A DNA stretch of 64,000 nucleotides from contig NC_058130.1 in the NCBI RefSeq assembly GCF_016433145.1, positions 735,156,692 to 735,220,691 of the forward strand. Direction: 5' to 3'. Origin of the DNA: Gracilinanus agilis. Taxonomy: Eukaryota. Below the pieces are notes generated by a model. It saw only the letters and a list, made by a program, of their open reading frames with translations, ran no database searches and was not told the DNA's origin. The position numbers and the translations under genes are program-made. This document shows, piece by piece, positions 11,954 to 63,281 of the stretch (within the stretch, counting starts at the first letter, position 1; each line of letters starts with the position of its first letter).

Positions 11954-13549
11954 ATGCCAATGAAATCTTATCACACACTTACCCCAGTCAATATGGGAGA
12001 GAAGAGTATGGCCACTTCAAATTGGCCAAAGATCGGATTAACTCCAGATATCTTGTCCCTTGTTTTTAGGTCCATAAAAAAGCTAGAACCAAGCTATTAG
12101 TATTGTCTAAAGGACCTGCTTTAATGAATAGATAAAAATTAAGGATTTCATGGTATTTTAAAAAGTGCTTGCAAATGGTGTTGTGTTTCCCCCGCCCCCC
12201 ATTCCTTCCCTCCACCAGATCGAAATAATCCCTCTCACCAGACTCTCTCTGGAGCCCAAATTACGTGAGCCTGGCTCCTTTTCTTCAGCATTATTAAGAT
12301 TTCAAATTAATGAGATTTGACTTCACTATACATATACTGCACGGGTTTTCCTTTTCACAAATAAGTAGCCCTTAACCCAAGAATTCCCAAAGAGTTTTCT
12401 ATTTGGGGAAGGTTCTCCAGAAATCATTTCATAGAATTATAATATCTTGGAGTTGGAAGATATTACAGGCCATCTCACCCTAACTCAACTGTAATCAATC
12501 AGTCTCCAAGCATGTATTAAGTACTGACTAATGGCAGGAGCCACGCTAACCACCACACTCCAAGAACATCCTTGGCTGGTGGCCATCCCTCACTGGAAAA
12601 TGGCGGCCATGTCCAACATTCTCTTCACTGTCTTCAATGGGCACTGAGAAGAGGAGGGACAGAGCCAGTAGATTTGATGCAGGACGTGAAGCGAGGTCTT
12701 CCTGAAGCTAGATCTCTATCCACAACCACCCAGATACACAGGAAAGAGAGTCGGAGCTCACCTTCTAGGATTTTCCTGTCCATTTGGAGATGTGACCAAA
12801 GCCAGTGTGGAAAAGGAGCTAATAATTCAGGAGGTTCTTTGCCAGGGACCAGTGGAAGGAGCCACAGTTAGTTATGGCTATGGGGCCTCAAAGGAAAGAA
12901 ACTGGACAATCCCAGGTAGTAGAAGGTGGTACTTTTATTGGGCCTTAAAAGGGTGGGTAAGATTTGGAAGGGAGGGAATANNNNNNNNNNNNNNNNNNNN
13001 NNNNNNNNNNNNNNNNNNNNNNNNNNNNNNNNNNNNNNNNNNNNNNNNNNNNNNNNNNNNNNNNNNNNNNNNNNNNNNNNNNNNNNNNNNNNNNNNNNNN
13101 NNNNNNNNNNNNNNNNNNNNNNNNNNNNNNNNNNNNNNNNNNNNNNNNNNNNNNNNNNNNNNNNNNNNNNNNNNNNNNNNNNNNNNNNNNNAGGGAGGGA
13201 GGGAGACAGAGAAGAGGAGNNNNNNNNNNNNNNNNNNNNNNNNNNNNNNNNNNNNNNNNNNNNNNNNNNNNNNNNNNNNNNNNNNNNNNNNNNNNNNNNN
13301 NNNNNNNNNNNNNNNNNNNNNNNNNNNNNNNNNNNNNNNNNNNNNNNNNNNNNNNNNNNNNNNNNNNNNNNNNNNNNNNNNNNNNNNNNNNNNNNNNNNN
13401 NNNNNNNNTGCCACCCTTTCTTCTCTTCTTCCTCTGTTCTCAGCCTTTAGTAATCTGATTTCCATTCTGCTCATTCAGCTGCAATTGTGATTGCAAATGA
13501 TCTCTTAATTGCCAAATTCAGACCTTTTCTTAATCTTCATCTTTATTTT

Positions 13550-13745
13550 TTTTAAACCCTTACCTTCCATCTTAGAATCAATACTGGGAATTGGTTCCAA
13601 GGCAGAAGAGCAGTAAGAGCTAGGCAATGGAGGTGAAGTGACTTGCCCAGGGTCCCACAGCTAGGAAGTGTCTGAGACCAGATTTGAACCCAGGACCTCC
13701 CTTTCCTGGGCTTGACTCTCCATCCACTGAACGACCCAACAGCTC
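13550..13745 (-). mobile_element. SINE1_Mdo-like SINE
   Basis: reverse-complement match to the SINE consensus seen across the window. Confidence 0.85.
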
Positions 13746-13907
13746 CCAAATATACGTATATTTTCAAAAGAATGTAAGCTCCTTGAGGGCAAAAATCGTT
13801 TTTGTTTTTCTTTGCATCCCAAGTACTTAGCACAGTAAATACTTAATGCTTGTCTGTTGCGACAAGTAGGAGGTAGAGATGAACCTAGAGCCAAAAGAGG
13901 AGCTGGA

Positions 13908-14100
13908 AGGGCAGCTAAGTGGCTCAAGGGATAGAGAACCAGGTCTGGAGACTTGTGGTCCTGGATTCAAATATGGACTCCATAACTTTCTTGCTTGACT
14001 GTGGGCAAATCAATTAACCCTAATTGCTTAGCTCTTACTGCTCTTCTGCCTTGGAACCAATATTAATTCTAAGACAGAAGGTAAAGTTAAAAAAAAAAAA
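13908..14100 (+). mobile_element. SINE1_Mdo-like SINE
   Basis: gggcagctaagtggctc head and A tail. Confidence 0.8.
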
Positions 14101-14487
14101 AAAGGAGCTGGGTTTGAATCCCTCCTCCAAAATACTATCTGTTAGCCCCAGACAACAAACTCTCTGAAAAAGAGCCTTCGTTCTCTTATTAGTAAAATTG
14201 TAATAATAACATTTCTGGGGGTCACTACCTCTCAGTTGATATGAAGATCAACTGAGTTAAAATAAAAAAATTTAAATTAAAAATTTTTATTAAAAAAATT
14301 AAAAATAAATAAGTAAATGAGTTAAAATCTATAAAGGCTTTGCATATCTCGAAGTGCCATAGAAATGGAGCTTTTACAACGGTTCTTTAATTTTGAGAAG
14401 GAAACGGGGAAAGAGGAAGTCCACCTTTATCATCAGTTATTATTAGCTTGACTGTTTTTATCTCTATTTTTATAAAAGTGTCTATTC

Positions 14488-14690
14488 TGGGGGCAGCTGG
14501 GTAGCTCAGTGGATTGAGAGCCAGGCCTAGAGACGGGAGGTCCTGGGTTCAAATGTGGCCTCAGACACTTCCCAGCTGTGTGACCCTGGGCAAGTCACTT
14601 GACCCCCATTGCCTACCCTTACTACTCTTCTGCCTTGGAGCCAATACACAGTATTTATTTTAAGACGGAAGGTGAGGTTAAAAAAAAAAA
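14488..14690 (+). mobile_element. Full-length SINE1_Mdo-like SINE with TSD
   Basis: TSD aaaagtgtctattc (14474-14487) / aaaagtatctattc (14688-14701). Confidence 0.92.
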
Positions 14691-14996
14691 AGTATCTATT
14701 CACAATTCGCTCTGAGTTTTTGTCCAGCAGTGCTTGCAGAGGGAATGTGGGCAGCGGTTAGAAAGCTGCCCCTCTGGGGGGGTTGGGGGGGAGGGTCGTC
14801 TAGCGAACGGGCTTGCCGAGAAGGCGCAGAGCTGCTTTTCCAGAAGGTGCTCCCTCCTACATCGCCGATGTCTCACAGATCTCTGTTTGATTTGATCTCT
14901 GTGTTTTTAGGGTTTGGGGTTCGGGTTTTGGTTGGGCACCCCAGGAGGGACCCTCGTAATGCCCCCCAGGCTCATTCCGCCCCCCTCTGTCCCCAG

Positions 14997-15212
14997 AAAC
15001 CTGCGAAGGAGTAGACTGTGGTCCCGGCAAGGTGTGTAAGATGCACGGCGGCCGGCCCCACTGCGCCTGCGCCCCTGACTGCTCCGGACTTTCCATGCAG
15101 CTGCAAGTCTGTGGCTCGGACGGAGTCACCTACAGGGACGAGTGTGAGCTGCGGACCATCAAGTGTCAGGGCCACCCAGACCTGGGCGTCATGTACCAAG
15201 GGCACTGTAAAA
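14997..15212 (+). CDS. FSTL3: FSTL3 exon 3 (follistatin domain 1, [11 protein letters not shown]...[15 protein letters not shown]...YQGHCK)
   Basis: ccccag acceptor, gtgagc donor, 216 nt, 10-Cys follistatin/Kazal pattern. Confidence 0.97.
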
Positions 15213-15776
15213 GTGAGCTCCCGGCGGCGGCCCAGGCTCCTCCTCCCTCCCTTCCTCCACTCTCCCCCTCTGTCAAGGCACCTAGATAAAGGACTGGACT
15301 TGGAGGCAGGAAGATCTGAGTTCGGATCCCGCCTCACACAATTCCCTGTGTCTCCCCGGGCAGGTCCCTTCCCTTCTGCCTCTCCATTTTGTCATCTGCA
15401 AAATGGGGAGAAGAGCGCCGACTCAGAGCGTCCTTTTGAGGATCAAAGGAGATAAAATTTGGAAAGCACTTTGCAGACCTTAAAGTGATACGCAAACGTT
15501 AGCTATCATTATGGCTGCCGTACTCCTCGGTGAACCTTTCCCTGCCCCTCACTGAGCCCCCATCCGCCTTCCTTGGTCTGCCTTCTCCCCGCCGACCTCC
15601 ATCTCTCTCCCTTGGCTGCCATTGCCCTCCCAGAGTTCCCATCCCTCTTGCTTAGCCCCTCCATCTCCCTCGCTGAGCCCCAGCGGCTCCTTACTTAGCT
15701 CTCCATCCCGCCACTGGCCTCCCGTCACCCCGAGGGACCCTCCTCGTGCCTCACTGACCCCCCTCTTCCCCCTCAG

Positions 15777-16004
15777 AGAGCTGCTCCCTTGTGGTGTGTC
15801 CAGGGACTCACACGTGTGTGGTGGACCAGACTGGCAGTGCCCACTGTGTCATCTGCCGCTCTGCCCCCTGCCCTGTGCCCTCCAGCCCCAACCAGCAGCT
15901 GTGCGGCAACAACAACGTCACCTATGCCTCTTCCTGCCACCTTCGGCAGGCCACTTGCTTCCTGGGCAGATCCATTGGTGTGCGGCACTCTGGCAGCTGC
16001 ACAG
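15777..16004 (+). CDS. FSTL3: FSTL3 exon 4 (follistatin domain 2, [12 protein letters not shown]...LCGNNNVTY...[15 protein letters not shown])
   Basis: cctcag acceptor, gtaggt donor, 228 nt, in frame with exon 3. Confidence 0.97.
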
Positions 16005-18010: not shown

Positions 18011-18166
18011 CTATCCAGATTTCTGAGTCACACTCTGGATCCAAGTGATGAAGGCAGAGACAAGTGTGTAGACATCTGGAGTTCTGGGGTCTCCACACCA
18101 GGTGCCCGAGAAGGAGACGATGCCCAGGACTTGCTTTCCACAGATCAGGGGCCCTCCAGAGTCCGC
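18011..18166 (-). CDS. PRSS57: PRSS57 (NSP4) exon 5 ([10 protein letters not shown]...[18 protein letters not shown]...*)
   Basis: cag acceptor, catalytic Ser in ADSGGP (Ala193 typical of PRSS57), TAG stop at 18013-18011. Confidence 0.95.
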
Positions 18167-18704
18167 CTGGCAGGGGAAAGGGTCCTGCTGGTTAGAGTGC
18201 TGATCCTGAGGGGTCCCACCTTGGCACCCAGCACTGCTCTGGGTAAGCTCCCCACCATGCCCAGGGCTGTGGGGGAACCTGCTAAATGCTAGTCTCAGCC
18301 CTGTCCCTTATCAATGTCATTCCCTCTCTTTGGGGCTCAGTATCCTCCTTGATAAAATAAGTATGTTGGATTCAGTGATCTCTAAGTTCTATAACTCTCT
18401 GATGCTCTCTCTGATCTATAAGATGGGAGTAATACCTGCCCTGCGCCCTCACGGTATCATAGACCAAGAACTGGGAGCAATCTTAAGAGACAATCTAGTC
18501 TAGTGATTCTTAACCTGGGGCCCAAGGATCTAGTCCAGAGGTTCTTAACCTGGGATTCTCTCCAACAGTCAGTCCTGTGGATAGATTTCAAAGGAATCTG
18601 TGAACTTATATGGGGGAAAATGACTTCTTTATTTTCACTAACCTTTAAAATCTGGTCATTTCCTTCCAATATGATTTTTTTTAAAAATGGAAACTCCAAG
18701 TCCA

Positions 18705-18908
18705 ATTTTAAATTTAAACCTTTACCCTCCGTCTTGGAATCAATACTGGGTATTAGTCCCAAAGCAGAAGAGTGGTAAGGGTAGGCAACGGGGGTCAAGT
18801 GACTTGCCCAGGGTCACACAGCTGGGAAGTGTCTGAGGCCAGATTTGAACCTAGGACCTTCCGTCTCTAGGCCTGGCTCTCAATCCACTGAGCCACACAG
18901 CTGCCCCC
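18705..18908 (-). mobile_element. SINE1_Mdo-like SINE (left arm of an inverted pair)
   Basis: full consensus match; flanking duplication aatatgattttt..aaaaa. Confidence 0.9.
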
Positions 18909-18939
18909 CTAATATGATTTTTTAAAAAATTATTACCTT

Positions 18940-19130
18940 GGGGGGCAGCTGGGTAGCTCAGTGGATTGAGAGTCAGGCCTAGGTTCAAATCTGGCCACAG
19001 ACACTTCCTAGCTGTGTGACCCTGGGCAAGTCACTTGACCCCCATTGCCTAGCCCTTACCACTCTTCTGCTTTGGGACTAATACCCAGTATTGATTCCAA
19101 GACTGAGGGTAAGGGTTTAAATTTAAAATA
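18940..19130 (+). mobile_element. SINE1_Mdo-like SINE (right arm of an inverted pair)
   Basis: consensus match with a short internal deletion; flanking duplication aaaattattacc. Confidence 0.9.
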
Positions 19131-19851
19131 TATATATATATATGTATGTATACATGTATATATAAAATAAAATAAAAATAAAAATTATTACCCTGAGAGA
19201 GATCCATAGACTTCACCAGATTGCCAAAGTGCTTTAGCTTTAACACTAAAAAGGTTACTTCTATCAAGTCCAATTGCCTTATTTTATAGAGGAGGAAAAT
19301 GAGAGTCAACTAGGCTAGGCATGTGGCATTCTCCTGTTTTGGGGTTCCACACACACTCTCTCTTCTGTTTCTATCTCTTCCACCTTTTACTTTGTCTCTG
19401 CCTGTTTTTTCCACATCAGGACCAAAGCCTGAGTGATTAGCTTTAGAGAGTCCTGAGCAAATAAGAAAGGGGAGAGATCGGAAGTCCAGGTAGCAAATGA
19501 ATCTTCAGGCAGGGCCATCTATATGGAAGTGGAAAGGTCCCAGGAGGTGGGAAGCCCAGGATGGGTCCCTTTCTGAGCCCTAGCTTGCCCGGGTAGAATC
19601 AAAGAATCAAATCCTGCCTAGGATGCTAATGTCAGTAAATCACTTTACCTCCCCCGACCTCAGTTTCCTCCTATGTAAAAATGAAGACATTTGGGTTAGT
19701 TCATCTGAGAGCTTCCACCAGGCTGTAGCTCTCTGATTCTATGGTTCATAAGGGATGATCGAGCAAAAACTCCCTGGACTAAGCCTTCTTTTCCATGGCC
19801 TGCAGGGATAGTTGGACCTAGGGACCATTAGAGACACGGCGTGTCACTCAC

Positions 19852-20112
19852 CGTGCAGAAGCCTATGCGCTTCCATTTCTCACCAATGGCACAAAGCATC
19901 TTGCTGCTGATTTGGCCTTTCCAGGAGCTGTTACAGGTCATCCGATCCAGCACACTCACGTCCGCCTCCATTAAGCCTGGTGATGGGTGTCCGAAGTCAG
20001 ACAGAGAGCCCCAGCCTGACACCAGGCACCGTGTGCCATGCTTGGGGTCCACACCTTCCCCGGGCAGCTTCACTAGTCCCACTGAGGAGCTGAGGGTAGC
20101 CTCGCGATCTAG
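19852..20112 (-). CDS. PRSS57: PRSS57 exon 4 (LDREATL...CLVSGWG...GLMEA...CNSSWKG...GFCT)
   Basis: 261 nt, phase 0/0, cag acceptor and gtgagt donor; lies within ORF 19828..20184. Confidence 0.95.
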
Positions 20113-20943
20113 CTGGGGAGCAGAGAACGGTAGCTGTGGATCAGGAAGCATCCTTCGGCCATCATAGTGCCTGCCACTGACCAACAGGAAAAGTCTCCTG
20201 AATTCTCATCTAAATATGTCCTCTTGCAACAATAGCTGGCATTTATTCAGGGCTGTCATATTTGAAAAGAGCTTCAGTTGAGGACATTATCCCAAGTGAC
20301 CCCCTACGACAGACTCTAAGGGTATCATTATCCCTATTTGATTCAAGCATCGTGGATAGACCCCTTGTTGAGATCCTAGGGGAGGGCACGAAGAAGAATT
20401 GCTGAAGCAGGCAAGGAGGTGTTATGAGAAGCATTTTTGGAGGGAATATCCACATTGACGAGATCACAGATAGGAAATCAAGGAGGCAAAAGATTAACTT
20501 GACTGATCTCCCTGCGGGGGTGCCGATGAGAGAGGTAGGGGTTGGAAGGTGTGTAGAATCTGAGTCCAAATCTTTGCTTACACTAGGTTCATTCTTCTTC
20601 TGCTTAGAACAAGCTTCATCCCCTTACAGATCCTGCCTCTGCTGAGAGGTATTACTTAAGAAGCCTCTCTGTGCTAAGCAACCCCTGTTCCTCTAGCCGT
20701 GTGCTTTGGGACCCTAAGAAAGTCTCTTCCCTTCTCTGGGGTTCACCTTCCCTGTAGTCAAACCAAAGGGAATTGGACTCTAATCTCTAATGCCTGTCCG
20801 TCTTAGGTTTGATGGTGTTCTGGGTCCCTTCTGGCCCCGACAGTGTGTGTGTGTGTGTGTGTGTGTGTGTCTGACAACAACTCTGGACACCAGGAAGGAG
20901 AAGGGGAAAGGACACTGAGAAGATCTCCAGCACTTTAGCTTAC

Positions 20944-21088
20944 CTTCAGCAGACAAAGATCATTTTGATGCGTCTGAGGATCATAGTCTGGGTGCAGGAT
21001 AGATTGCTGGATGGTGAAAGTTTGTTGAGTGGGCTCAGTGTTGTTGGTGGAGTGGGCACCCAGCACTATCAGGCTAAGGCTGGTGTTT
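20944..21088 (-). CDS. PRSS57: PRSS57 exon 3 (IVLGAH...EPTQQTF...HPDY...NDLCLLK)
   Basis: 145 nt, catalytic Asp102 motif, cag acceptor and gtaagc donor. Confidence 0.95.
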
Positions 21089-21942
21089 CTGTGTTGGGAA
21101 AGAAATGTGACCTTCCAACCTGCTCTCCTCGGAGAAGGCCACTGGAGGACCAAGAGCAGGGAGGTTCGAATCTTTCATCTACCTATAAAACACTTGGGAG
21201 ATAGGTCAGATTTGAACCTTGGCTTGAGCAAGTCCCTTCCTCTCTCTGGACTTCCGTTATTCCTTCTGTAAAATGAAAGGTTGGACTGCCCTCTAGCTTT
21301 GGATCTTATGAATATATAGAGATGAAGGAGAAGTTGAGGGAGAAAAGATGGTGGAATAAACCCTGGGCTAAAGACTCAGGATTTTGAGTCCTAGTACTGC
21401 CATTGATGCAAATATTTCCCCTCTCTGGGGCTCAATTTTTCCGTCTTTAAAATGGGAACTTAATTCAGTGGTCTCTAGAATCTCTTTTAATTCTGACAAT
21501 ATATGAGTCTAAAAGGCAGTTAGGTATAGCAAGGGACAAATCTCTGAACCCCAGAAGACAGAACAGGTTCAAGATCAGGAGATTCTGATGGCCTTTGGTT
21601 CAGGAAAAATTAGAAAGGGGTGAAATGGGGGCAGGTAGGTGGTTCAGTAGATAAATAACCAGGCCTGGGGACCAGAAGTCCTGGGTTCAAGTCTGACCTT
21701 TGACCCTTCCCAAATGGATGACCCTGGACAAGTCACTCAGTCACCCTTTGGCTAGCTCTTTCTGTTCTGCCTTGGATCCAATACATAGTATTGATTCTAA
21801 GATGAAAGGTAAAGGTTTTTAAATTAAAAAAATTTTTTTTTAAATAGAAAAAAGAAAGGGATATAGGTGAAAGCCCTGGGGAGATAGCTGGATCCCTCTT
21901 GGTTGGGGTCTGGGAGCTAGAGCAAGGAGGGTTCCCTCTTAC

Positions 21943-22096
21943 TTGTTGAAGAAGCAGTGGGCTGCCGTCATCACCCACTGGGCCATGAAAAGCACTCCTC
22001 CACAGTGATGTTGGCCCATAAAGCGCACGGAAGCCATATAGGGCCTGGAGTGTGGCTTTACCTCTCGGCCACCAATAATTCGACCACTCTTGCAGC
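21943..22096 (-). CDS. PRSS57: PRSS57 exon 2 (..[23 protein letters not shown]...TAAHC)
   Basis: 154 nt, IIGG mature N-terminus, catalytic His57, gtaaga donor. Confidence 0.95.
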
Positions 22097-22375
22097 CTGG
22101 GAGCCCACAACAGCCAAGGAAAAAGGTAAGGATACCTGTCAGAAGCCAGCCTGGGGGACACAGAGGGTTGCAGAATCAGGATTCTTTGTAAAGGACCAAG
22201 GAAGGTAACAGAGAGAGAAAGAGAAACTTGACCTTTTGTTTCCCAGCCTTTGGTGAAGGAAGAGAGAGCAGGAGGGTAAAAGGTGACAGGAGAGAATTAG
22301 GAGCAGACACTTATTAGGTGACTAAGGCAGAGATGGGTATGGAGAGGGAAACAGGGTTGGAGAAAGAGATGAGGG

Positions 22376-22670
22376 GATGAGAATGGAGATTGGGGTCAGG
22401 GAGAATGGTGGAAATGAGGTCAGATACAAGGATGAGGGAAAGAGGAAAGGATGGGGATGGAGATGGAGATTGGGGTCAGGAAGCATGATGGGAATGAGGC
22501 CAGAAACAAGGATGAGGGAAAGAGGAAAGGAGGGGATGGAGATGGAGATTGGGGTCAGGGAGCATGATGGGAATGAGGCCAGATACAAGGATGAGGGAAA
22601 GAGAGAGGAAAGGATGGGGATGGGGATGGGGATTGGGGTCAGGGAGCATGACGGAAATGGGGATAAGGAG
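22376..22670. repeat. About 80-bp purine-rich minisatellite, roughly 3.5 copies, in PRSS57 intron 1
   Basis: attggggtcagg recurs at 22389, 22469, 22548 and 22632. Confidence 0.9.
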
Positions 22671-22898
22671 AGATGAGCATGGTTACAAGGAAAGTGATGA
22701 GGATGGGAAAGAAGCAGGAATAGAGATAGGATCAGAGTTGACAGAAAGTCAGTCATAAGGAAGAGCTTGGAGCTATGGAGAGGGGAAAAGAAATAAGGAA
22801 GTAGAGATAAAGGGAAGGGAGTCAGAGAGGGGTGAAGGGAAGGACAGAAGGGTGCTCCTGTCCCCAGGTTCCCAAACTCCTGGGAGCCTCTTGCTTAC

Positions 22899-22962
22899 GC
22901 TGGGCGTCCATGGGAACCAGTAGACTCAGTGGCAGCATTCTTGAGCTCCAGCCTGGCCCCAT
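22899..22962 (-). CDS. PRSS57: PRSS57 exon 1 (MGPGWSSRMLPLSLLVPMDAQ)
   Basis: ATG, 64 nt, phase-1 gtaagc donor in frame with exon 2; the leader is only moderately hydrophobic. Confidence 0.7.
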
Positions 22963-24046: not shown

Positions 24047-24052
24047 TTTATT
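24047..24052 (-). terminator. AATAAA polyadenylation signal of the PRSS57-like gene
   Basis: tttatt on + strand, about 207 nt downstream of the TGA at 24259. Confidence 0.7.
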
Positions 24053-24258
24053 CAAAATCAAATTCCTCAATTAAACCAGGAAGGCCCAGTCAATTCTCCC
24101 CTACTGGGCCAGCCCCTCTGAGAACCTTGAAAAGGTGTTTTCCTCTCTCTTGGACTAGGGTTTCCCCCATGTGAGATTGCAGGGAGAGGAAGCCAGATCA
24201 GGTGGGCCATCTGAGCTCCAAAGTCTTGATTTTTGTGTGCTGGGCATCACCAGTAGGA

Positions 24259-24411
24259 TCAATAATGTTGCAGGACGTCATAGATCCAGGGTATGAAGGT
24301 GGAGACACGAGCATAGACATCAGGGAAGCGGGGGTGCCCACAGAGGGGCGTTGAGAAGGACACCACACCTTGAAGCCTCCCTTGGCAGATGAGTGGTCCC
24401 CCGGAGTCTCC
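24259..24411 (-). CDS. PRSS57-like protease exon 5 ([50 protein letters not shown])
   Basis: cag acceptor, catalytic Ser195 in GDSGGP, TGA stop. Confidence 0.93.
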
Positions 24412-25244
24412 CTGCCAAGCAAGAAGGGACAGTATGAGGGCAGAAGAAGACTAAGTAAATATTAAAAGGCCACTGGGGAGAGATGGNNNNNNNNNNNNNN
24501 NNNNNNNNNNNNNNNNNNNNNNNNNNNNNNNNNNNNNNNNNNNNNNNNNNNNNNNNNNNNNNNNNNNNNNNNNNNNNNNNNNNNNNNNNNNNNNNNNNNN
24601 NNNNNNNNNNNNNNNNNNNNGAGAGGGAGAGACAGAGAGATAGACATAGAGAGAGAGGGAGAAAGAGACAAAGAGAGGGAGAGGAAGAGATGGAGGGGGA
24701 GGAAGACAGGAAGAGAGAGAGAGAAAGAAAAAGAGGGAGAGAAAGGGAAAGAGAGGTGGGGAGGGAGAGAGAGGGNNNNNNNNNNNNNNNNNNNNNNNNN
24801 NNNNNNNNNNNNNNNNNNNNNNNNNNNNNNNNNNNNNNNNNNNNNNNNNNNNNNNNNNNNNNNNNNNNNNNNNNNNNNNNNNNNNNNNNNNNNNNNNNNN
24901 NNNATAGACATAGAGAGAGAGGGAGAGACAGAGAGTCAGAGACAGGGAGAGGAGGGGGGAGAGAGAGAGGCAGAGAGACAGAGAGAAAAACCTAAGGAAA
25001 GAGATGGACACCCTACCTATTGGGGACTACTAGGCCTACCAGTGTGTCCCTCAAGGATCTTCTAGGCTAACAGCTGACTTCTAAGAAGGTGGGAGACAAG
25101 GACAGAGAAAGACACAGGGAAGGTGGAGAAACTGGGAGCCAGATGAGGGAAGGGCCTTGCCCCAGATTATTCTCTGATGAGGGAGGGGGCAGAATTGGGG
25201 CTAGAATGCAATTCTCCCAGCTCCCTTTTCCTCACAATCCTCAC

Positions 25245-25508
25245 CCCACAGACGCCCCGGAACTGGCCTCTCACAGAGCCCAAAGCGCAGACCATGTCCT
25301 GGTTGATGACTCCATTCCAGGAGCTGTTGCAGGCCTGCTTGGTTACCACCACAACAGACGCCTCCATGAGTACCTTTGCGGGATTATTCAGGCCTGTGGT
25401 GTCCCCCCAGCCACACACGTGGCACTGAGTCCCTGGGAAGACTGCTGTGTTCCATCTGGGAAGGCTGACCAGCCTCACTGACCTCGTGAGCAAAGCGGTG
25501 CCATTGAG
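25245..25508 (-). CDS. PRSS57-like protease exon 4 (LNGTALL...CHVCGWG...LMEA...CNSSWNG...RGVCG)
   Basis: 264 nt, phase 0/0, cag acceptor and gtgagg donor; lies within ORF 25167..25544. Confidence 0.93.
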
Positions 25509-25559
25509 CTGCAGGGAACAGAAGAGGCAGGAAGAGTTAAACATGGGGACAGAGATGGT

Positions 25560-25672
25560 GACACCTGAGAGATAGAGAGAGGGGAGGGAGAGGGGGATAG
25601 AGGGAGACAGAGAGAAAGGAGGAAGAAAGGGAGAGAAGGGAGGTAGAAGGAGGAGAGAAAGAGAAACAGGGA

Positions 25673-25737
<65 letters not shown>

Positions 25738-25820
25738 TGATAGACAAGGGATAGAGAAAGGCTTAGAGAGTAACAGAGAAAAGAGAAATGATAAGAGACA
25801 AAAACAAAGACAAGGAAAGA
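25560..25820. repeat. (GA)n / purine-rich tract
   Basis: directly visible; similar tracts at 24620-25010, 29045-29340 and 53100-53147. Confidence 0.9.
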
Positions 25821-25969
25821 GGCAGAGATGTGTTCTGAAATTCTTGGGGTTCACCCTTTCCCAATAGCCCTGGGAGTGGGGGCCACTTCCTCCTTCTCTC
25901 CTGTATCCCAAGCCTCAGACTGCCTCACTGGTCCCAGAGAACTGGGTAGCCTTGGGTTTAGGGGCTCAC

Positions 25970-26114
25970 CTTGAGCAGCTGTAGGTCACTGGTATCGGCC
26001 TGGGAATTATAGAGCGGATAAGGGACAGCCTGAAGGATCCCAAACACCTGCTGGGTTGACTCTGGGGTCAGCAGGGAGTGAGCACCCAGAACTATTTTGA
26101 AGTCAGTTAGGTTC
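25970..26114 (-). CDS. PRSS57-like protease exon 3 (NLTDFKIVLGAHSLLTPESTQQVFGI...SDLQLLK)
   Basis: 145 nt (same as PRSS57 exon 3), Asp102, cag acceptor and gtgagc donor. Confidence 0.93.
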
Positions 26115-26584
26115 CTGCAGCCCCAGGGAGGGAAGAAGAGACGTTAGCTTCTAGAGGATGGGGGATCCCTCCTCGATTCCCTCTCCAGTGATCTCAGCAT
26201 TCTGTCCCCACCCTGGGCAAAAAACATTTCTGGGACCTCTCCTGCCATACACCCTAGTAGAAGTGCCAATAAGCAGTGGAGAAAATGGAAACTCCCCAAA
26301 GCAAGACATCTACCCAGGGTCACACAGTGAGTCTGAAGGATGAGAGCCTTGGTCTCCTGGCTCCTTTCCATCCTGCATTTCCTTCCTTCCCCATTTTATA
26401 CTTGACAGAAAGGGAAGTTGAGGCTCGGGGACTTGCCCAAGGTCATGAAATAAATCTATAGGACTGGAACTCTGTCCCAAACTAGGGTGAGTTGCCAAGT
26501 GACTTCTGGGAGAGCTGATGTGACTGGGACTTTGGGACAGGGCACGGAAGTCAGGGAAGGGATGGGTCCCAGGGCTGGACTCAC

Positions 26585-26738
26585 TTGGAGACCTCACAGT
26601 GGGCAGCTGTGAGCACCCACTGAGGCCGGATGAGGGCCCCCCCGCAGAAGTGCTCACCCTCGTACTGGATGGAGACTGCATATGGGTAGGAGTGGGGTCT
26701 GGCTTCTTGACCCCCCACGATTTGGCCTTGGTGGGCTC
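26585..26738 (-). CDS. PRSS57-like protease exon 2 ([19 protein letters not shown]...[18 protein letters not shown])
   Basis: 154 nt (same as PRSS57 exon 2), IVGG N-terminus, His57, gtgagt donor. Confidence 0.93.
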
Positions 26739-29700
26739 CTGGGGACAGAAACGAGTGTCTAAGCCTTCTTCATGGAGTTCCACATCCCAGATCTGGGGGA
26801 TATGCTGTCTCCAGAAGGCACTTTCATTCTCAGGGCACTCCTGAGTAGAGTCAGTGTTATCAAAGGATCTTGGCGAGAGTCCACTAGGATCTGTCAGGGT
26901 ACTCTGGGTGGGGAGGAAGGAAGGAAGGCTCGAATTGTCAAGATGACCATCTTCCAGAGTAATCTAGCCTTCAAGGTCTCAGGAAAAATACCCTGAGGTC
27001 TCAAATCAGACTCCACTGTCTTCTCAGACACAGGAGCAAGAAAAGAGTGACAGAGACAGAAGACACTGTACTGCTCAAGAAAATTCTATGATTCCCTATT
27101 GCGTCTAAGATAAAAGACCAACTCATCTCTAGAATTGAGATTCGGACTCTTTAAAAAAAAATCCTTTCCTTCCTTTCTATCTTAGTAAGAAAACAAATTT
27201 TTTTTAAACCCTTACCTTTTGTCTTAGAATCAATCCTCTGACCTCAGACACTTCCTAGCTGGGTGACCCTGGACAAGTCACTTGACCTCCATTGCCTAGC
27301 CCTGACCACTCTTCTGCCTTAGAACCTCTTACCTTCTTTCTGTCTTAGAACCAATACTAAGTATTAGTTCCAAGACAGAAGAGTGGTCAGGACTAGGCAA
27401 TGGGGGTCAAGTGACTTGCCCAGGGTCAACCAGCTAGGCAGTGTCTGAGGCCAGCTTTGAACCCAGGACCTCCCGTCTCTGGGCCTGGCTCTCCATCCAC
27501 CGAGGCACTTAACTGCCCCCTTTCTTTCTATCTTAGTAACAATTTTAAGACAGAAGGATGAGGGCTAGGCAAACAGGGGTAAGTTATTTGTTCAGGGTCA
27601 CATAACTAGGAAGTATCTGAGACCAAATTTGAATCCGGGTCCTCCCAACTCCAAGCCTGGCTCTCTGTCCATTGTGCCACCTAGCTATTAGCTGCCCTGA
27701 CAATCTGACTCGAACCCGTCTTCCTAGAGGGATCCCACGTTATTTCCCATTCACATGCTCCGTGTTGTATCTCTGCCCCTGGGGAGGTCTCCATCTTCCC
27801 CTGTGCTTTTTTGACCCTTCTTGCTTGGCAGGATTCTGTCTGGGAGATTCTCCCTCTTCGCCCCCGTCCAGTAGGACTCCTTCCGTGTTCTTAATGATCT
27901 CTCGGACCCCAGAAACTATTTTGTATTCACTCTTTATGTTTGTCTATGTAGGTGGTGTTCCTTGAGGGCAGAGAGGGTTTGGGTTTTGTCTTGGCATCTC
28001 TAGTAGCCCCGGCACATAGTAGGCCCTCCAAAATGTTTGTGGAATAGCAGTGAATTTTATTTGCTGTTACAACTAACTCCCCATCTCGCCTTATGTCCCT
28101 TGCACTAGATGCACACACACACCCTACGTGCATGTGGTTGCTTTGGCCGGATGACACATTTTCAGGATGACTCCGGAGGAGAACAAATATAGAACAAAAA
28201 TAAGAGGCACTCCAGAGACAGAGACTGAAACAGAGTAGAGGCAAAGATGGCCAAGGACTGGGTTTGCCACTCATTCAGCCATTCAGGAAGTACCTACTAT
28301 GTGCCAGGCACTTGGTTAACCAGCAGGGATACCGAGAAAGGCAAAAGACAGCCCCTGCCCTCATGGAGCTCACAGTCCAATGAAGGAGGCCACATGCAAA
28401 CAGCTATGGACAAATACACTATGTAGGAGGTAGCTGGGTGGCCCAGTGGATAGAGAGTCAGGCCTGGAGTTGGGAGGACCTGAGTTCAAATCTGGCCTCA
28501 GATACTTCCTAGCTATGTGCCCCTGGGTAAGTCACTTAACCCCCATTGCCTAGCTGTTACTCTTCTGCCTTGGAACTAATACTTAGTATTGATTCTAAGG
28601 CAGAAGGTAAAGGGGTTTAAAAAAAAAAAAGCAATTTATAGGGTAGATTGGAGATACTCATCAGAGGGAAGGCATTAGCATTAAGGAGGACCGCCAAAAA
28701 TTTGCTGTAGAAGGTGGGACTTGAAGGAAGCCAGAGATGCCAAAAGGCAGAGACAAGGAGAGAATGTTTCTGGCAGGAGGGATAGTCAATGAAAATGTCT
28801 GGACAGGCAGAGAGGCAGGGACAGAGATACTTTAACCCCAGAAAAGGGAGACCAGGAGATGGATTCCTGAGAAGAAGTTTGTCCTAGGATANNNNNNNNN
28901 NNNNNNNNNNNNNNNNNNNNNNNNNNNNNNNNNNNNNNNNNNNNNNNNNNNNNNNNNNNNNNNNNNNNNNNNNNNNNNNNNNNNNNNNNNNNNNNNNNNN
29001 NNNNNNNNNNNNNNNNNNNNNNNNNNNNNNNNNNNNNNNNNNNNCAGACAGACAGAGGAGAGAGACAGACAGACAGACAGAGACAAAGAGACAGACAGAG
29101 GAGGTACAGACAGACAGACAGAGGAGAGAGATAGACAGAGACAAATGGACACACAGAGGAGAGAGAGAGACAGAGACAAACACAGACAGAGAGACAGAGA
29201 CAAAGAGAGACACAGACAGACAGAGACAAACACAGACAACAGAGAGAGGAGAGACAGAGGAGAGGGAGAGACAGAGAGAGGAGGGAGAGAAAAGGAGGGA
29301 GAGGGAAAGAGAGAAGGAGAGAGAGAGGTGGGGGAAAGTATAGTAAGGATTTGTGCCTCAGAGCCTGAGAGGTGTTTCCTAGCCCAGTGACCCTGGGCAA
29401 GTCACTTAATCCCATTGCCTAGCCCTTACCACTCTTTGGCCTTAGAATTAATATTGATTCTAAGAGGGAAGGTAAGGGTTCGAGATGGGGGAGCCTGAGG
29501 GCTGGCTGGTCCCCACAAGCATCAAACACACTCCAATTCCAGCTCACTAAAGGCCTGAGGAGCAAAGAGAGACCTCTTTGGGGAGAACTTCCCCAATTTT
29601 AGGATTGCAATAAGGCAATAGGAACTCCTCTTTCTGTTTTGAAAGCTGCTTGGTTTCCCCTATCTGCTAAGCCTCCTAGTTGCTCTCTAACTTCTCAGAT

Positions 29701-29856
29701 AGGGAAACTGAGGCGCAGAGAGAAGGCCCCTGTTCAGGGTCACCTGACGATTCAAAGTCCAAGCTGAGGCCAGTGCCCCCATCTCCTGGCTTCTCCCCTG
29801 GTACATGGTCCTAGGAGAGGGGCTGAGGCACACTTGGGGCAGGGGCAGACCATTAC

Positions 29857-29923
29857 CTGAGGAGGTCAGCTGGCCCAGGGTCGCCACCCAGGACAGGAGC
29901 GTAGAGATCCCGGGGGCCCTCAT
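29857..29923 (-). CDS. PRSS57-like protease exon 1 (signal peptide MRAPGISTLLSWVATLGQLTSSG)
   Basis: gcaccATG Kozak context, 67 nt, phase-1 gtaatg donor in frame with exon 2, TATA-like box upstream. Confidence 0.8.
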
Positions 29924-29983
29924 GGTGCTTGCCAGAGTCTTTGTTCACACCTTGGAACAGGACTGGGCCTGGGATGGTTCCAA

Positions 29984-29990
29984 TTAAATA
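29984..29990 (-). promoter_or_regulatory. TATA-like TATTTAA of the PRSS57-like gene
   Basis: about 60 nt upstream of the ATG on the minus strand. Confidence 0.55.
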
Positions 29991-47665: not shown

Positions 47666-48422
47666 ACAAAAGAAAACAAAAGTCTACTGCACATCGGGTC
47701 TGTGCTAAAGTGAAAAAAGTCATTGCCCTCAAGTAGCTCATAGTCTACAGCATGTGAACAACCACTTGCAGACAAGATAAATTCAGGATAAGTTGGAGAA
47801 AATCTACAGGGAGGAGGCACTGGGAAAGGCTTCTTCCCAAGGGGAGATTTTAGGCAGGCTGGGAAGGGCGCCTGGGCAGGAAGCCAGGAGGCAGATGAGG
47901 AGTGAGAGAATTCCAGCCATGGGGCAAGGGGGCTGTCAGTGAACATGTTCCATCTTGGAGGGAGCCACTGGAGTTTATTCAAGGAGTGGAGGGTGGCATG
48001 GTCAGACCTAGGTTTAGGCATATCAATTTGGTGGCTGTGGAGTGCAGGAAAATCAACCAGTACTGAAGTGGTCCAGGAATAGGTGATGACAGCTTGCACC
48101 TAGATAGCAGCAATATCAGAGAGAAGAGCACATAGCAGAAGGATTTCTAATGGAATCTGGCAGTTAGGTGTTGCAGTGGTAGAATGTGGGGGGCCTGGAG
48201 TCAGGAGGACTCTTCTTCCTGAGTTTGGATAGGGCCTCAGACATTTCCTAGCTGTGTGGCCCTGGGCAAGTCACTTACCCTTCTGTCTTAGTTTCCTCAC
48301 TTGTACAAAGAGATGGAGAAGGAAATGGCAGTGTCTTTGCTATAAAAACCCCAAATGGGATCAGAGTCAAAGTGACTGAACAGCAAAACTAATGGAAGTT
48401 CCTTAAAGACCCACCATCTTTT

Positions 48423-48550
48423 TTATTATTATTTATTATTTTTAATATTTTTGTTTTTATTTTGAATATTTTCCCATAGTTACATGTTTCATGTTCTTTC
48501 CCTCTCCCCAAACCCCCTCCATCTCCACAAGCTGACGCACAATTCCATTG
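48423..48550 (-). mobile_element. Short 5'-truncated L1 3' end with 18-bp TSD
   Basis: TSD aaagacccaccatctttt at 48405-48422 and 48551-48568; same 3' UTR sequence as the 11.7-kb copy. Confidence 0.9.
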
Positions 48551-49449
48551 AAAGACCCACCATCTTTTATTCCAGTTAAGTTTTAAATTACCCTAACCTC
48601 CTATTCTGAACATAACCCCATAACCTTACCTTGCATTTAGAGTTGGGAAGACTCCAGTCCGAGTCTCTCTGTGTGCCTGGACAAATCTTTTAATTTCTGT
48701 CCGCCTCAGCTTCCTTATCTCTAAAATAGCTTTAAAACAGCACCCAGGGTTGTTTCAGGATCAGACCAGTTAATATTTGTAAAGTAAAAAATTGCTTCTT
48801 TCTAAAAAAAAAAAAAGATGCCTCAATTACCCTCTTTTCTGATCTTTACCCCAATCCCCATTTTCCACTTGCCCTAACCTTCCATCCACCTTGCAAACAA
48901 GAAAAACAAAGACTTTGCCACAAATATGAGTAAACAAGTAAGAAAAATTCCTACCTAGGCTGGTGACCTCTCCATCTCTCTTTTTAAAACATTAAAAACA
49001 AACAAACAAACAAACAAAAAACAACCTTCACCTTCTGTTTTAAAATTTGATACTAAGTATAGGTTCCAAAGCGGAAGAGGGGTAAGGGCTAGGCAACTGG
49101 GGTAAAATGACTTGTCCAAGATCATGCAGCTGAAAACTGTCATATTTGAACTCAGGCACTCCCGTTTCCAGTTTTGGATCTCAATCCACCAAGCTGCCTT
49201 TTACTGCTGAGGATACTGAGGCAGCAGAGGTGACAGGACAGTCAGATTGGTTGGACCCTCCGAAGTCTCAGAGTTTCAGGGTTTTTACAATTCCTTGCCC
49301 CGCTTTGACTAAGTTCCTTTCCCACTGTGGGCCTCAGTTTCTCCCCCCTGTAAAATACTGCATTGGAGAAATGAGCACATCCCCAGGCTCACTCCCACTG
49401 TGCCAGGTGTCTGGAGATACGGGCTGGGGTGGGGAATGGGCAGGCTGTA

Positions 49450-50350
49450 GTGATGGCTGGTGGCCGGCAGGAGGCGGCGTCGCACCGCTCCCGGGCCCCT
49501 GCCCAGCCCCAGCCCAGCCCAGCCCAGCCCAGCGCAGCTCAGCCCTCCCCCGCGCGCGCTCGCTAGCTCCCTCGTTCCGAGCCTCCGCCCGCCCCGGACA
49601 ATAACAGCGCTCCGTCTCGTCCCCTCCCTCCCTCCGCTCCTCTCCCGGCTGCGATGCCTCGTAGCCTCCGCCCGCCCCCGCCCCCGCGCCCCGCAGCCCG
49701 GACTAGTCCCGCGCCCCTGCGCTAGCCGGCCCGCGGGGAGTGAGGGCGCAGCGGGTGCGGGGGGCACCGCGGGCGCTTGGAGATCCCGACTCCGGCTCTG
49801 GCTCCTCCCCGCCGCTCTCCACCTGGGCCCGGCCGCTGCCGCCGCCCCCGCCCCGGGGGCCTAGCCCTGAGCCCCCGAGGCTGCTCTCCCCTCGCCCCAC
49901 CCTCCTCCAGCCCCTCCCTGGCCGCCGCTGCCTCCTCCTCCTCCTCCTCCTGCTAGCCTCAGACGCCCGGACTGCGGGAACCATGGAGTGAGTAGTCAGG
50001 GGCTGGGGGTGTTGGGGATCCGGAGGTCTAATGGCTGGAAGAGCCGGCCTTTAGGGGTCCAGGGCCTGAAACGGGGAGGGGGGGAATGTCTGAGGATCCG
50101 GTAGCTCAAGGTCTGGAACCAGGAGACCGGGCGCTGTGAGGCGGGAGGGTCCTGGAACCAGGGGTCGGTCTGTAGATGGGGAGTCCGAGGCTCCAGGGGT
50201 GGGGGTATGGGGACTCCTTTGGCGCTTTCTCCCGTAGTGGCTGGGGCGGGGGGAGGGGGGCTCACGGATTAACCCGCCTCTGCTTCTTGGGCCAGGGCTG
50301 TCAGTGGTTGACCCCACCCCTTGTCGGCGGCCCCCCTGCACCCCTGCTGG
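49450..50350. promoter_or_regulatory. PALM: CpG-island promoter of PALM
   Basis: very GC- and CpG-rich, GC boxes, no TATA; contains the PALM start codon. Confidence 0.85.
49983..49987 (+). CDS. PALM: Paralemmin-1 exon 1 coding part (ATG GA)
   Basis: gaaccATGGA|gtgagt: Kozak ATG followed by a phase-2 donor; splices in frame to 63233. Confidence 0.8.
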
Positions 50351-53100
50351 GGGCTCGGGCCTCGGAGAGCTTGGACTGGAAGGCTTCCCGCAGGTGGTGG
50401 TGGGTCTGGCCTCCAGGTTACAGCCCTAGCTCTTGTTTGGGCTCCTGGAAGATGCTGCCTAAAGACGGGGAAAGGGATGGAGGGAGCCAGACTCTACTCT
50501 GGGCCACATCCTCCTTCATACTCAAGGGCAGGGCCTGTGGCCGGCCCCCCTTTTCCCCCCTCGGTTCCCCCACCGGGCACAGGTGCCATGAAAGGCAGAC
50601 AGGCTGGACAGACAGGCTGGGCCTTAGGGACTCCTGGGGAAGAGGAGACTCGCAGCTTCTGCAGTCTTAGGCCTTTGACGCCAAGATTCCCGCCACCCTA
50701 CCCTCACCTTCAAACCCATCCCCATCCTCATCCTCATCCCCATCCCCATCCCCATCCCTATTCCTATCCCCATCCCCATCTCCATCCTTACCCTTCCCAC
50801 TAAGCCATGGTCTTAACTCCTCCCCATCCTTCCTCCTAGAGACTCTGGTGCTAGCTCCCTTCCTGAAAGCTCGCCTTAGAACGGACGTCAAGAGCTCCTC
50901 TCCCCTCTTCCTGCCTCCCCAAAGTGCCGAAGAGTACCCTCCCCCCAATCTCATGACCCTTCCCCCAGCCAGGGTTCCTCCCAGGAGTAATTGCTTGTAA
51001 ATCAAGGGGCAGCCTCTTCCCCATCCCTCCCTATGGAGTGATGGCCAGCGCCTCCTCGCAGCTCTAATAGAACCATTGGCTAACTCCCTCCCTCCCTCCT
51101 TCCCTCCCTCCCTCCCTCGTGCTTTCACAGAAAGCCATGGGCTCAGTCTGAATCCTTCCCACTCTCTCTGCCCCATTCCGTCAGTCAGCAGCCTAAAGTG
51201 CCTACTGTGTGCCAGGGACGGGGCTAAGCTTTGGGAGTCCGGGGCAGAAACAATGAGCTCTTCTCCCAAAGAGCCCCCACTGGAATGGGGAAGGGGCATG
51301 ACTCTAGCGGTCCATACGAGATAGATGTGGTAGGGATTCGTGGGCTCTCAGTTCTTCCCAGAAGAAGGCACTCAGGGGTGGGGGAGAAGGTGGGCTTTGA
51401 ACTGAGGCTTCTAGATTTAAGAGCTGGGAGGGACCCTCAGAGACTGGTGAGTACATCTCACATTTTACAGAGAAAGAAACTGAGGCCAATAGAAGTGCTG
51501 GTCTTTTCCCCACCATAGGTTCTCTTTCCTTGTCTCTCCACCCAGTAACTCTCTTTGGGGGTGTGGGGGGAATGGGTACCCCAGTTCCCTACAGAGCCCA
51601 TGGACTGGGGAATTCCTCTACCCAACTGCCACTGGATTTCTCCAGGAACTTTTTTAGCCTGAGGTATGTGGTGCCTTGAGCTTCAAGGATTTATTTAGAA
51701 AGGTGCTTTGAGATCTCTGGTTAAATCATAGTCCTGTCCCAGGAAATCTGAATCTCAGAGCCATGCTGTAATTGGGATGGCCAGAAATGTGGGTTCCACC
51801 TTGCCCTGCCCCTTCCAATCAGGGCCTCAGTTTCCCTCTCCTTAAAAGGTTTTGGTATAACTCTTTGAGTTCCTTTCAAGATCTGAGTTGGGGATTCTAG
51901 GAGCCATCTCCAGTCCTCTCACCTCATGACTGAGGAGGCCCCACCCTTGGCTTGGCCTGAAACTTGGCCCCTTTTGCTTTAGAAACTCCTGACAAGCAGA
52001 CAAAGCCCTATCCCAGAGGGAACCCAGCCCTGAGCCTTGGGGCCCTGGAGGGAGAGAGCAGCCCAGCCCAGCCTCATCTCTTCCTCCCTTGTTTACCTCA
52101 GGGCTTGCTGCAAAAGTCAGCCAGAGGTCCCTATGTACAGACCTACAGAGAATTTTGGTATAGAGCCCCCTACCTTAGCCCGGGCCCTAGTGCTGAGCCC
52201 TTGGCTGGGACGCACATTTCTTTGCATTCTCTGTTTTCTAAGTGTCTGTATTTCCATGCCAGCTGATGAGACACAGATTCCGCCCCAACCCAGTCCTGTG
52301 GGAGCTTCTAGTCCAATAAGGGGGGGTGCCAAATGCACGTACCCTAAAATTGTAGTAGAGACAGGAGAGACCCGTTCAAAGGGCTCAAGGCAGGGAATTT
52401 AACAGACTTGAAGAGGAGAGAATGCTCTCAGATGGAGGGTAGGCTTCAAGGAGGAGGTGGCATCTGAACTGAGCACTGGAAGAAGAGAAAGGTTTCAACA
52501 GGGGAAAGGGGAGGGAGTACATTCCAGCAAGGGGTCTGCTCTACCTGATCGAGCAGAGACTTTAGGAAGGTAGAATGAAATCCGGGAGGCATCCGGTTTG
52601 GCCAGAACTTCCTGTGTGAAGGAGAGTGCTATTTCAGAACTAAAAAGAGCAGACAGGTACGTTGGAGCCAGAGTCTGAAGGGCATCGAAGGTTCAGCTAA
52701 GCGTTTGGATTTGGTTCTGGAGGCACTAGGGAGTCCTGGAAGGTTTTTGAGTAAGATAACTGTGACAAGCTCCGAGGCACGATTTGAGAAGGGTATTTTG
52801 GTAATCAGTGAGGTCGGACTGGAGAGGGGAGGGACCAGCCAAGATCATATATTAACCTGGTTCCTGTGCCCACCTGTCCAGAGATGATAGAGACCATTTC
52901 AGGAAGGAGGGATCACTCCTGGCTGGGATGCAAGGAACATACATGGTGGCTGATAATCCTGGAAGGTTTCTTGGGCTTCTTGGTGGGCATGATATTTGAG
53001 CAGGGGCTGGAAGGTTAAAGATTTCAACAGGCACAGGTAGGAGGAATATTGGGGGTCTATTTTAGGCAAGGGAGATAGAAGCATATACCATGGGATCAAT

Positions 53101-63232: not shown

Positions 63233-63281
63233 AGTTTCTGTGGAGACCACCTTCCAACAGGAAAGGCTTCAGGCCATTGCA
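63233..63281 (+). CDS. PALM: Paralemmin-1 exon 2 (E-VSVETTFQQERLQAIA); the gene continues beyond the window
   Basis: long T-rich acceptor, gtgagt donor, matches paralemmin motif ETTSQQERLQAIA. Confidence 0.9.

Follow-up and report, generated by a model that had tools for sequence, protein, structure and literature searches.

Whether mammals carry one protease gene or two at the PRSS57 locus is the question raised by a 64,000-nucleotide stretch of the genome of the marsupial Gracilinanus agilis (contig NC_058130.1, positions 735,156,692 to 735,220,691; hereafter the window), in which a second gene of the same kind, here called 57L, stands upstream of PRSS57, the gene encoding the neutrophil protease NSP4. 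Comparative maps of the met-ase locus show one PRSS57 gene per mammal (PMC4646688; bioRxiv 10.1101/2022.06.02.494303), and the main comparative papers give a single PRSS57 for opossum and platypus. We conclude that 57L is very probably a functional, selectively maintained paralogue of PRSS57/NSP4, a tandem duplicate older than the split between monotremes and therians. As a system it is of a known kind: an ancient mammalian paralogue, and one that is not specific to marsupials.

Structure and family identity of 57L

57L lies on the minus strand and comprises five exons of 67, 154, 145, 264 and 153 nt, with GT..AG at the ends of every intron and intron phases of 1,2,0,0 (Table 1); its coding sequence of 783 nt specifies a preproprotease of 260 amino acids and a stop. 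The original prediction, made from the DNA alone, had described a five-exon GT-AG gene for a 260-residue protein with a complete catalytic triad, and our analysis arrived at the same exon sizes, phases and sequence; the Kozak ATG (ACCATGA), TATA-like box (TATTTAA) and AATAAA that it had listed were likewise located, as consensus matches. It had also read the gene as a second member of the PRSS57 family, intact and lying in tandem upstream of PRSS57, between FSTL3 and PALM, and this arrangement stands. The spliced product is identical at 260 of 260 residues to RefSeq XP_044541302.1, "serine protease 57-like [Gracilinanus agilis]", and 243 of the 260 residues are shared with the Monodelphis model XP_056678056.1; a 57L gene model is already in RefSeq for Gracilinanus agilis and many other species. 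Three runs of N interrupt introns 1 and 4, clear of every exon and splice site of 57L, and the assembled lengths of these introns may differ from the true ones. Because the orthologues of Antechinus and Dromiciops have the identical 67/154/145/264/153 exon structure, and because the spliced product matches the database protein in full, we take it that no exon is hidden in these gaps.

The mature protein has 232 amino acids, an isoelectric point of ~7.7, three N-glycosylation sequons and nine cysteines, and is in these respects much like the product of the neighbouring PRSS57. The Pfam Trypsin domain (PF00089) covers residues 29-253 (E = 1.2e-62, profile positions 1-220 of 220), while a search of NCBIfam, a prokaryote-oriented library, returned no match. 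Compared with the sequences of solved structures, 57L scores highest against human PRSS57/NSP4 (216 bits), followed by factor D (176), granzyme A (174), elastase (167) and granzyme M (164). The AlphaFold model, computed from an alignment of 55 sequences (mean predicted local distance difference test score 81.4, predicted template modelling score 0.81), has the NSP4 entries 4Q7X/Y/Z as its top four fold matches in the PDB, at template modelling scores of 0.93-0.95 and 44-45% identity; elastase comes next, then factor D and proteinase 3 (PR3). By its Trypsin domain, modelled fold and catalytic residues, 57L belongs to the chymotrypsin-fold (S1A) serine proteases.

Over the mature domain, 57L and the neighbouring PRSS57 are identical at 113 of 231 positions (48.9%), which agrees with the ~113/232 (49%) of an earlier hand alignment, and the motifs TQQ, LMEA, CNSSW, VSFS and PDVY are indeed common to both. 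The exon sizes had been said to match as well: exon 3 does (145 nt in both), and exon 2 does so only in part, since in PRSS57 it measures 208 nt when spliced at the acceptor that agrees with models from other marsupials, and an internal in-frame AG would have to be used to give 154 nt. Five exons with phases 1,2,0,0 are a mark of granule-associated haematopoietic serine proteases, and 57L has this organisation.

Orthologues and phylogeny

A search with exon 4 against 50% cluster representatives returned mostly multi-domain or fragmentary proteases, together with two 57L-type proteins whose C-terminus reads ...DVLQHY; the orthologue set was then assembled from searches with one of these proteins, and afterwards the bilby orthologue, as query. 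Marsupial orthologues, 72-77% identical to the window protein, come from Macrotis, Notamacropus, Dromiciops, Antechinus, Trichosurus and Vombatus. The echidna protein is 57% identical (platypus was assigned via 90% clustering only), and eutherian orthologues, at 57-62%, come from Dasypus, Tamandua, Choloepus, Echinops, Manis and Equus, with Tenrec added via clustering. Two protein searches, genomic DNA not being searched, brought up no 57L-type protein from any primate, rodent, carnivore, bat or cetartiodactyl, and the gene has apparently been lost several times independently within Boreoeutheria.

We placed these proteins in a maximum likelihood tree of 70 sequences (LG+C20+F+G4, 256 columns), nine of them granzyme M, rooted with granzyme-A-type and sturgeon/paddlefish chymase-like proteases; ELANE, PRTN3 and CFD lay outside this sampling and were compared with 57L through PDB scores and fold ranks. 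The PRSS57 family forms a clade of 56 rows (support 99/97), apart from GZMM and the GZMA-type proteases. Within it, a 57L clade (100/99) joins the echidna gene to seven marsupial genes, that of the window among them, and to seven eutherian sequences (Dasypus, Tamandua, Choloepus, Echinops, Manis, Equus and one of unknown species), with a marsupial subclade at 100/98 and a eutherian one at 100/100. Mammalian PRSS57 proper, including the downstream gene of the window, is a separate clade at 100/99; 57L falls outside this NSP4-proper clade and its neighbour falls inside. The nine granzyme M sequences, those of Equus and Echinops among them, form their own clade at 100/100. Because the clades are separate, the downstream gene is the orthologue of NSP4 and 57L is an old paralogue, and because the echidna gene sits inside the 57L clade, the duplication predates the monotreme-therian split. 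The original prediction that the duplication is old is borne out. Its companion idea, that the gene was retained by marsupials or lost by eutherians, is overturned: orthologues occur in three eutherian superorders in the same PALM-57L-PRSS57-FSTL3 order, and the functional eutherian orthologue at this locus on whose absence the idea depended is found in Tamandua, Dasypus, Echinops and Manis.

In BLAST comparisons, 57L shows 45-50% identity to sauropsid and amphibian 'PRSS57', slightly above its similarity to mammalian PRSS57. Approximately unbiased (AU) tests rejected none of three groupings: mammalian PRSS57 with 57L (p 0.195), 57L with the sauropsid genes (0.361) and PRSS57 with the sauropsid genes (0.165). 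A mammal-specific duplication and an older one would both fit, and the sauropsid and amphibian genes may be orthologous to 57L, to PRSS57 proper or to both (AU p 0.17-0.36). A 'serine protease 57' of the newt Lissotriton, whose branch is long (0.6), joins mammalian PRSS57 proper (99/88), and the anuran genes form a clade of their own; this placement might be either long-branch attraction or a hint of a duplication older than amniotes, and we do not trust it.

The echidna locus also holds a degenerate exon-3-like fragment (…VLGAHSPDSLKTSWKVFGF…DPKTHEDDLCTF; L002:16012-16146) on the same strand as, and ~2 kb downstream of, the 57L-type gene. Its best matches are to marsupial PRSS57 proper and not to 57L (37-43% over 46 amino acids, E ~1e-6 in a small database), and no further PRSS57 exons were found within 10 kb. 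The fragment may be a relic of a PRSS57 proper lost in monotremes.

The names given to 57L-type proteins in databases are inconsistent: Dasypus, Echinops, Manis, echidna and platypus have a 'serine protease 57', and the Equus proteins are called 'granzyme M' or 'granzyme G-like'. In Vombatus, a 'serine protease 57' model of 528 amino acids has the length expected for a fusion of the two tandem genes. Names of this kind could mislead orthology tables.

Active site and substrate preference

In chymotrypsin numbering, set by conserved landmarks, 57L has His57, Asp102, Ser195, Ile16, Asp194 and all the cysteines, and the catalytic triad, Ile16 and Asp194 are kept in every orthologue whose sequence spans these positions. 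Gly189/Ser216/Asp226, the "GSD" triplet that Akula et al. reported in all PRSS57 genes (PMC4646688), is found in the window gene and all 57L members; the GZMM and GZMA-type outgroups differ. The rest of the pocket separates the two mammalian clades. 57L has Val190 (Phe only in Antechinus), Gly192 (Ala in Equus and Dasypus), Gly193 and Ser or Thr at 217 (Phe in Manis; Thr in the window gene), without Trp219; mammalian NSP4 has Phe190 (Ile in Ochotona), Ser or Thr at 192, Ala193 (Gly in Ochotona), Gly217 and Trp219. PRSS57 of archosaurs and turtles shares Val190 and Gly193 with 57L, and birds have Ala or Thr at 192.

The pocket of NSP4 is occluded, and the selectivity of the enzyme for arginine has been ascribed to Ser192 and Ser216 at its surface, where P1-Arg binds in an 'up' position (PMC7914634); in a docking study Phe190 contacts the guanidinium group (PMC4783772). 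The window protein retains Ser216 but has Gly192 and Val190 in place of the other two. Because Gly189/Ser216/Asp226 is kept, we would favour cleavage after arginine for 57L, by analogy with NSP4 and at even weight with all other preferences taken together. Rather less probable, though it deserves serious consideration, is a working protease with a preference other than that of NSP4: either an elastase-like taste for small aliphatic P1 residues, or a basic side chain reaching Asp226 in the usual 'down' mode. The pocket residues by which the 57L clade departs from mammalian PRSS57 would suit such an enzyme; neutrophil elastase and PR3 also pair Val or Ile at 190 with Asp226 (PMC7914634), and elastase is the next best fold match of 57L after NSP4. 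Against this, position 216 is Ser as in NSP4, not Val or Ile as in elastase and PR3 (PMC4646688), and bird PRSS57 has Val190 with Ala or Thr at 192, yet 'bird NSP4' reportedly prefers P1-Arg (PMC7914634, Fig. 4 legend; unpublished data, species not named).

Selection and transcription

Ratios of nonsynonymous to synonymous substitution rates (dN/dS) were computed by NG86 from coding sequences obtained by exact protein-to-genome mapping at orthologous loci. For 57L, the window gene gives 0.37 against Antechinus (dS 0.44; bootstrap 95% 0.25-0.50) and 0.36 against Dromiciops (dS 0.39; 0.25-0.51), with no bootstrap replicate above 0.66 in either comparison; PRSS57 gives 0.32 between the window and Dromiciops (0.21-0.46), and pairs among the Tamandua, Echinops and Manis 57L genes give 0.24-0.33 (upper bootstrap limits <=0.48). 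Purifying selection acts on 57L and PRSS57 to a similar degree, among marsupials as among eutherians, and the neutral ratio that had been named as a danger to the original prediction is not what the marsupial pairs show.

RNA runs with words of the 57L region were all from related species, at a share of <=0.10. Contigs were examined over 24200-27200 in four runs, two of which gave none. In run X9, a contig lying on exon 5 at ~95% identity jumps from 24410 to 25244 with CT..AC on the plus strand, which is the predicted intron 4 of 57L; the ~95% fits the 93% protein identity of 57L to Monodelphis. Expression is supported, if thinly, for this one junction and in a close relative only, so that the earlier call for spliced reads is answered for intron 4 and not for the other junctions.

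A duplicate already decaying, its frame merely still open, is a highly improbable account of these data. The thin evidence of expression and an unspliced contig would suit it, as would the apparent repeated loss of 57L in eutherians, which makes the gene dispensable in some lineages. Several further points weigh against reading 57L as a working protease of the NSP4 type: the RNA support comes down to one contig of depth ~9, with 30 nt on the exon-4 side, in a related species; a contig of run X3 continues from exon 5 into intron 4, as unspliced RNA or DNA would; junctions 2-3 and 3-4 were not seen in the contigs over 24200-27200; the dN/dS figures are approximate, because dS between marsupial orders is 0.4-0.6; and the P1 preference is a guess, because Phe190 and Ser192, the residues tied to arginine recognition in NSP4, are absent. 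On the other side, monotremes, seven marsupials and several eutherians have all preserved the reading frame, the triad, the cysteines and the splice sites, dN/dS is well under 1 and on a par with that of PRSS57, and one spliced junction was seen. We reject the pseudogene on intactness, dN/dS and that junction.

Organisation of the window

The PRSS57 of the window was located, on the same strand as 57L, by tblastn of the 57L protein against the window, and its exons were then assembled (Table 1). FSTL3 and a PALM-like exon enclose the pair; the latter encodes the motif ETTFQQERLQAIA, which we take to be that of human PALM. Annotation gives the order PALM(-) / 57L(+) / PRSS57(+) / FSTL3(-) in four eutherians, Tamandua, Dasypus, Echinops and Manis, in each of which it shows the adjacent Paralemmin gene. 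Among marsupials, the annotated order is 57L / PRSS57 / FSTL3 at the loci of Antechinus, Dromiciops, Notamacropus and Trichosurus, and 57L / PRSS57 at that of Macrotis. In lying between FSTL3 and PALM, 57L has the position of the PRSS57 family in the broad sense.

Table 1. Features of the window, in window coordinates (N, undetermined base)
Feature	Position	Strand	Details
57L exon 1, coding part	29857-29923	-	67 nt; ATG at 29923-29921, signal peptide, donor GT
57L exon 2	26585-26738	-	154 nt; propeptide end, IVGG N-terminus, TAAHC with His57
57L exon 3	25970-26114	-	145 nt; TQQVF, Asp102 (SDLQLLK)
57L exon 4	25245-25508	-	264 nt; LMEA, CNSSW, Gly189-Val190-Cys191
57L exon 5, coding part	24259-24411	-	153 nt including stop; GDSGGP with Ser195, Ser214-Phe215-Ser216-Thr217, Asp226, C-terminus WIYDVLQHY
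TATTTAA, TATA-like element	29984-29990	-	67 nt upstream of the 57L ATG; consensus match in the sequence only
AATAAA, polyadenylation-signal consensus	24047-24052	-	207 nt past the 57L stop; consensus match in the sequence only
N run	24487-24620	.	within 57L intron 4 (24412-25244), GA-rich simple repeat on either side
N run	24776-24903	.	within 57L intron 4 (24412-25244), GA-rich simple repeat on either side
N run	28892-29044	.	within 57L intron 1 (26739-29856), beside GACA-rich simple repeat
PRSS57 (NSP4) orthologue	18011-22962	-	five exons, 22962-22899, 22150-21943, 21088-20944, 20112-19852, 18166-18011; 277 aa, intact
FSTL3	5889-15988	+	FST_N exon ~5889-6011 (Pfam E 1.2e-11); 3' exons 14948-15196 and 15773-15988 (tblastx to Tamandua FSTL3)
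PALM-like exon	63237-63281	+	encodes ...ETTFQQERLQAIA; candidate, exon limits undefined

Exon 2 of PRSS57 offers two in-frame AG acceptors 54 nt apart (22096-22150, minus strand), which would give a long or a short signal/pro region; the exon measures 190 nt in Dromiciops and 154 nt in Tamandua. Long GA- and GACA-rich simple repeats occupy 24621-24775, 24904-24990, 25540-25830 and 29045-29330, in introns 1, 3 and 4 of 57L; such repeats border all three runs of N and are probably the cause of the assembly gaps. Copies of a marsupial repeat resembling a short interspersed element, with the sequence …gtcacttaa(c/t)c…cattgcctag…, lie in both orientations in intron 1 of 57L (27220-27480, 28430-28600, 29390-29450). 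Between 57L and the PALM-like exon, the stretch 48000-52000 is richer in guanine and cytosine (fraction 0.52-0.57, observed/expected CpG up to 0.51) and may be the promoter or first exon of PALM. The open reading frames of this stretch, and long ones at 43.7, 47.5 and 50.7 kb, have no Pfam match.

Discussion

We suggest that 57L came to sit head-to-tail upstream of PRSS57, between PALM and FSTL3, through a tandem duplication. Its product would be made as a preproenzyme and would lose first its signal peptide and then a short propeptide with an even number of residues (...HQ-GQ before IVGG; the sequence allows the four residues HQGQ). Cathepsin C, which does this for other granule proteases, is the probable trimming enzyme, and the cut would free Ile16 to pair with Asp194. 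The active enzyme would be stored in the granules of blood-forming, probably myeloid, cells and would probably cleave after arginine like NSP4, its Val190, Gly or Ala at 192 and Gly193 being the pattern of bird PRSS57.

Among known proteases, PRSS57/NSP4 (PDB 4Q7X-4Q80) is the closest relative: a tandem neighbour at the same locus with five exons and the same intron phases, 49% identity for the window copy and 44-45% for human NSP4, the best match in sequence and fold, and Gly189/Ser216/Asp226, Phe215, CNSSW and a similar mature size of 232 amino acids in common. 57L differs from it in its separate clade, in Val190/Gly192/Gly193/Thr217 as opposed to Phe190/Ser-Thr192/Ala193/Gly217 and the lack of Trp219, in its short C-terminus (...DVLQHY), and in its apparent absence from primates and rodents as judged from protein searches. 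With sauropsid and amphibian 'PRSS57' it shares the family branch (97-99 support against GZMM), Gly193 and, in archosaurs and turtles, Val190; position 192 is Ser, Ala or Thr in those proteins and mostly Gly in 57L. Neutrophil elastase and proteinase 3, which belong to the same wider chromosomal neighbourhood in human, resemble 57L in Val/Ile190 with a buried Asp226 and are its second-best fold matches, but have Val or Ile at 216 where 57L has Ser, and score ~50 bits lower in sequence. Granzyme M is likewise a chymotrypsin-fold granule protease of the same extended locus; it differs in clade and in its S1 residues, and 57L lacks the marks of a granzyme M.

One might still ask whether the names should be exchanged, 57L being the true PRSS57 orthologue and the downstream gene an extra copy. 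The slightly higher similarity of 57L to sauropsid and amphibian 'PRSS57', its canonical Gly193, kept as in non-mammals, and the fact that in echidna and platypus the sole gene annotated as 'PRSS57' belongs to the 57L type would all be in keeping with such an exchange, which we nevertheless consider very improbable. The downstream gene groups at 100/99 with eutherian PRSS57, including NSP4-like sequences, and carries the Phe190/Ala193/Trp219 signature of eutherian PRSS57; because of this grouping and this signature, orthology with human NSP4 belongs to the downstream gene, and 57L as its orthologue is rejected.

No more credit is due to a retention by marsupials alone, with loss in eutherians as a whole. 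The failure of two protein searches to find the gene in primates, rodents, carnivores, bats and cetartiodactyls, and published locus maps that show PRSS57 only (PMC4646688), would be expected under it; the intact 57L genes of Tamandua, Dasypus, Echinops and Manis, whose synteny is conserved, the presence of 57L in Equus and Choloepus, the eutherian subclade at 100/100 and the dN/dS of 0.24-0.33 refute it. Finally, that 57L is a relocated GZMM, CFD or ELANE/PRTN3 of the met-ase locus, as the automatic naming of the horse orthologue as 'granzyme M' or 'granzyme G-like' might suggest, is next to inconceivable, for the nine GZMM sequences stand apart at 100/100, GZMM has Ala189/Pro190/Pro-or-Ser226 where 57L has Gly/Val/Asp, and the PDB scores put PRSS57 (216 bits) above CFD (176), elastase (167) and GZMM (164); the original prediction had named the relocation of a gene such as GZMM or CFD as a danger to itself, and it is upheld, by the tree with respect to GZMM, by PDB scores with respect to CFD and elastase, and by the S1 triplet with respect to GZMM, CFD and ELANE alike. 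57L as a GZMM orthologue is rejected.

A broader scenario, which we offer tentatively and think unlikely in full, is that both 57L and NSP4 were present in the mammalian ancestor and that reciprocal losses followed. Monotremes would have kept 57L only, as the exon-3-like echidna fragment nearest PRSS57 proper would suggest; most boreoeutherians, including human and mouse, would have kept NSP4 only; and marsupials, xenarthrans, tenrecs, equids and pangolins would have kept both. 57L would then be of the more ancestral type (Gly193, and the Val190 of archosaurs and turtles) and mammalian NSP4 derived, and, if this is true, 57L may have a pocket and a substrate range absent from human neutrophils.

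In the literature that we searched there is no description of a 57L paralogue, and one relevant preprint labels chicken and frog genes "Prss57-like"; that 57L constitutes an ancient orthologue group of mammals in its own right, one that human and mouse apparently lack, seems not to have been recognised there. Authors have regarded NSP4 as one lone neutrophil protease, very old and conserved to an unusual degree. Our data add a second, equally constrained lineage, present in marsupials, monotremes, armadillos, anteaters, sloths, tenrecs, pangolins and horses and apparently not in human or mouse, and it changes orthology assignments, in that the monotreme 'PRSS57' and some armadillo, tenrec and pangolin 'PRSS57' entries are of the 57L type. 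For the family, 57L is a natural experiment on residues 190, 192 and 193, which are thought to underlie arginine recognition by NSP4; for model marsupials and for horses, it would add a likely granule protease to the immune repertoire.

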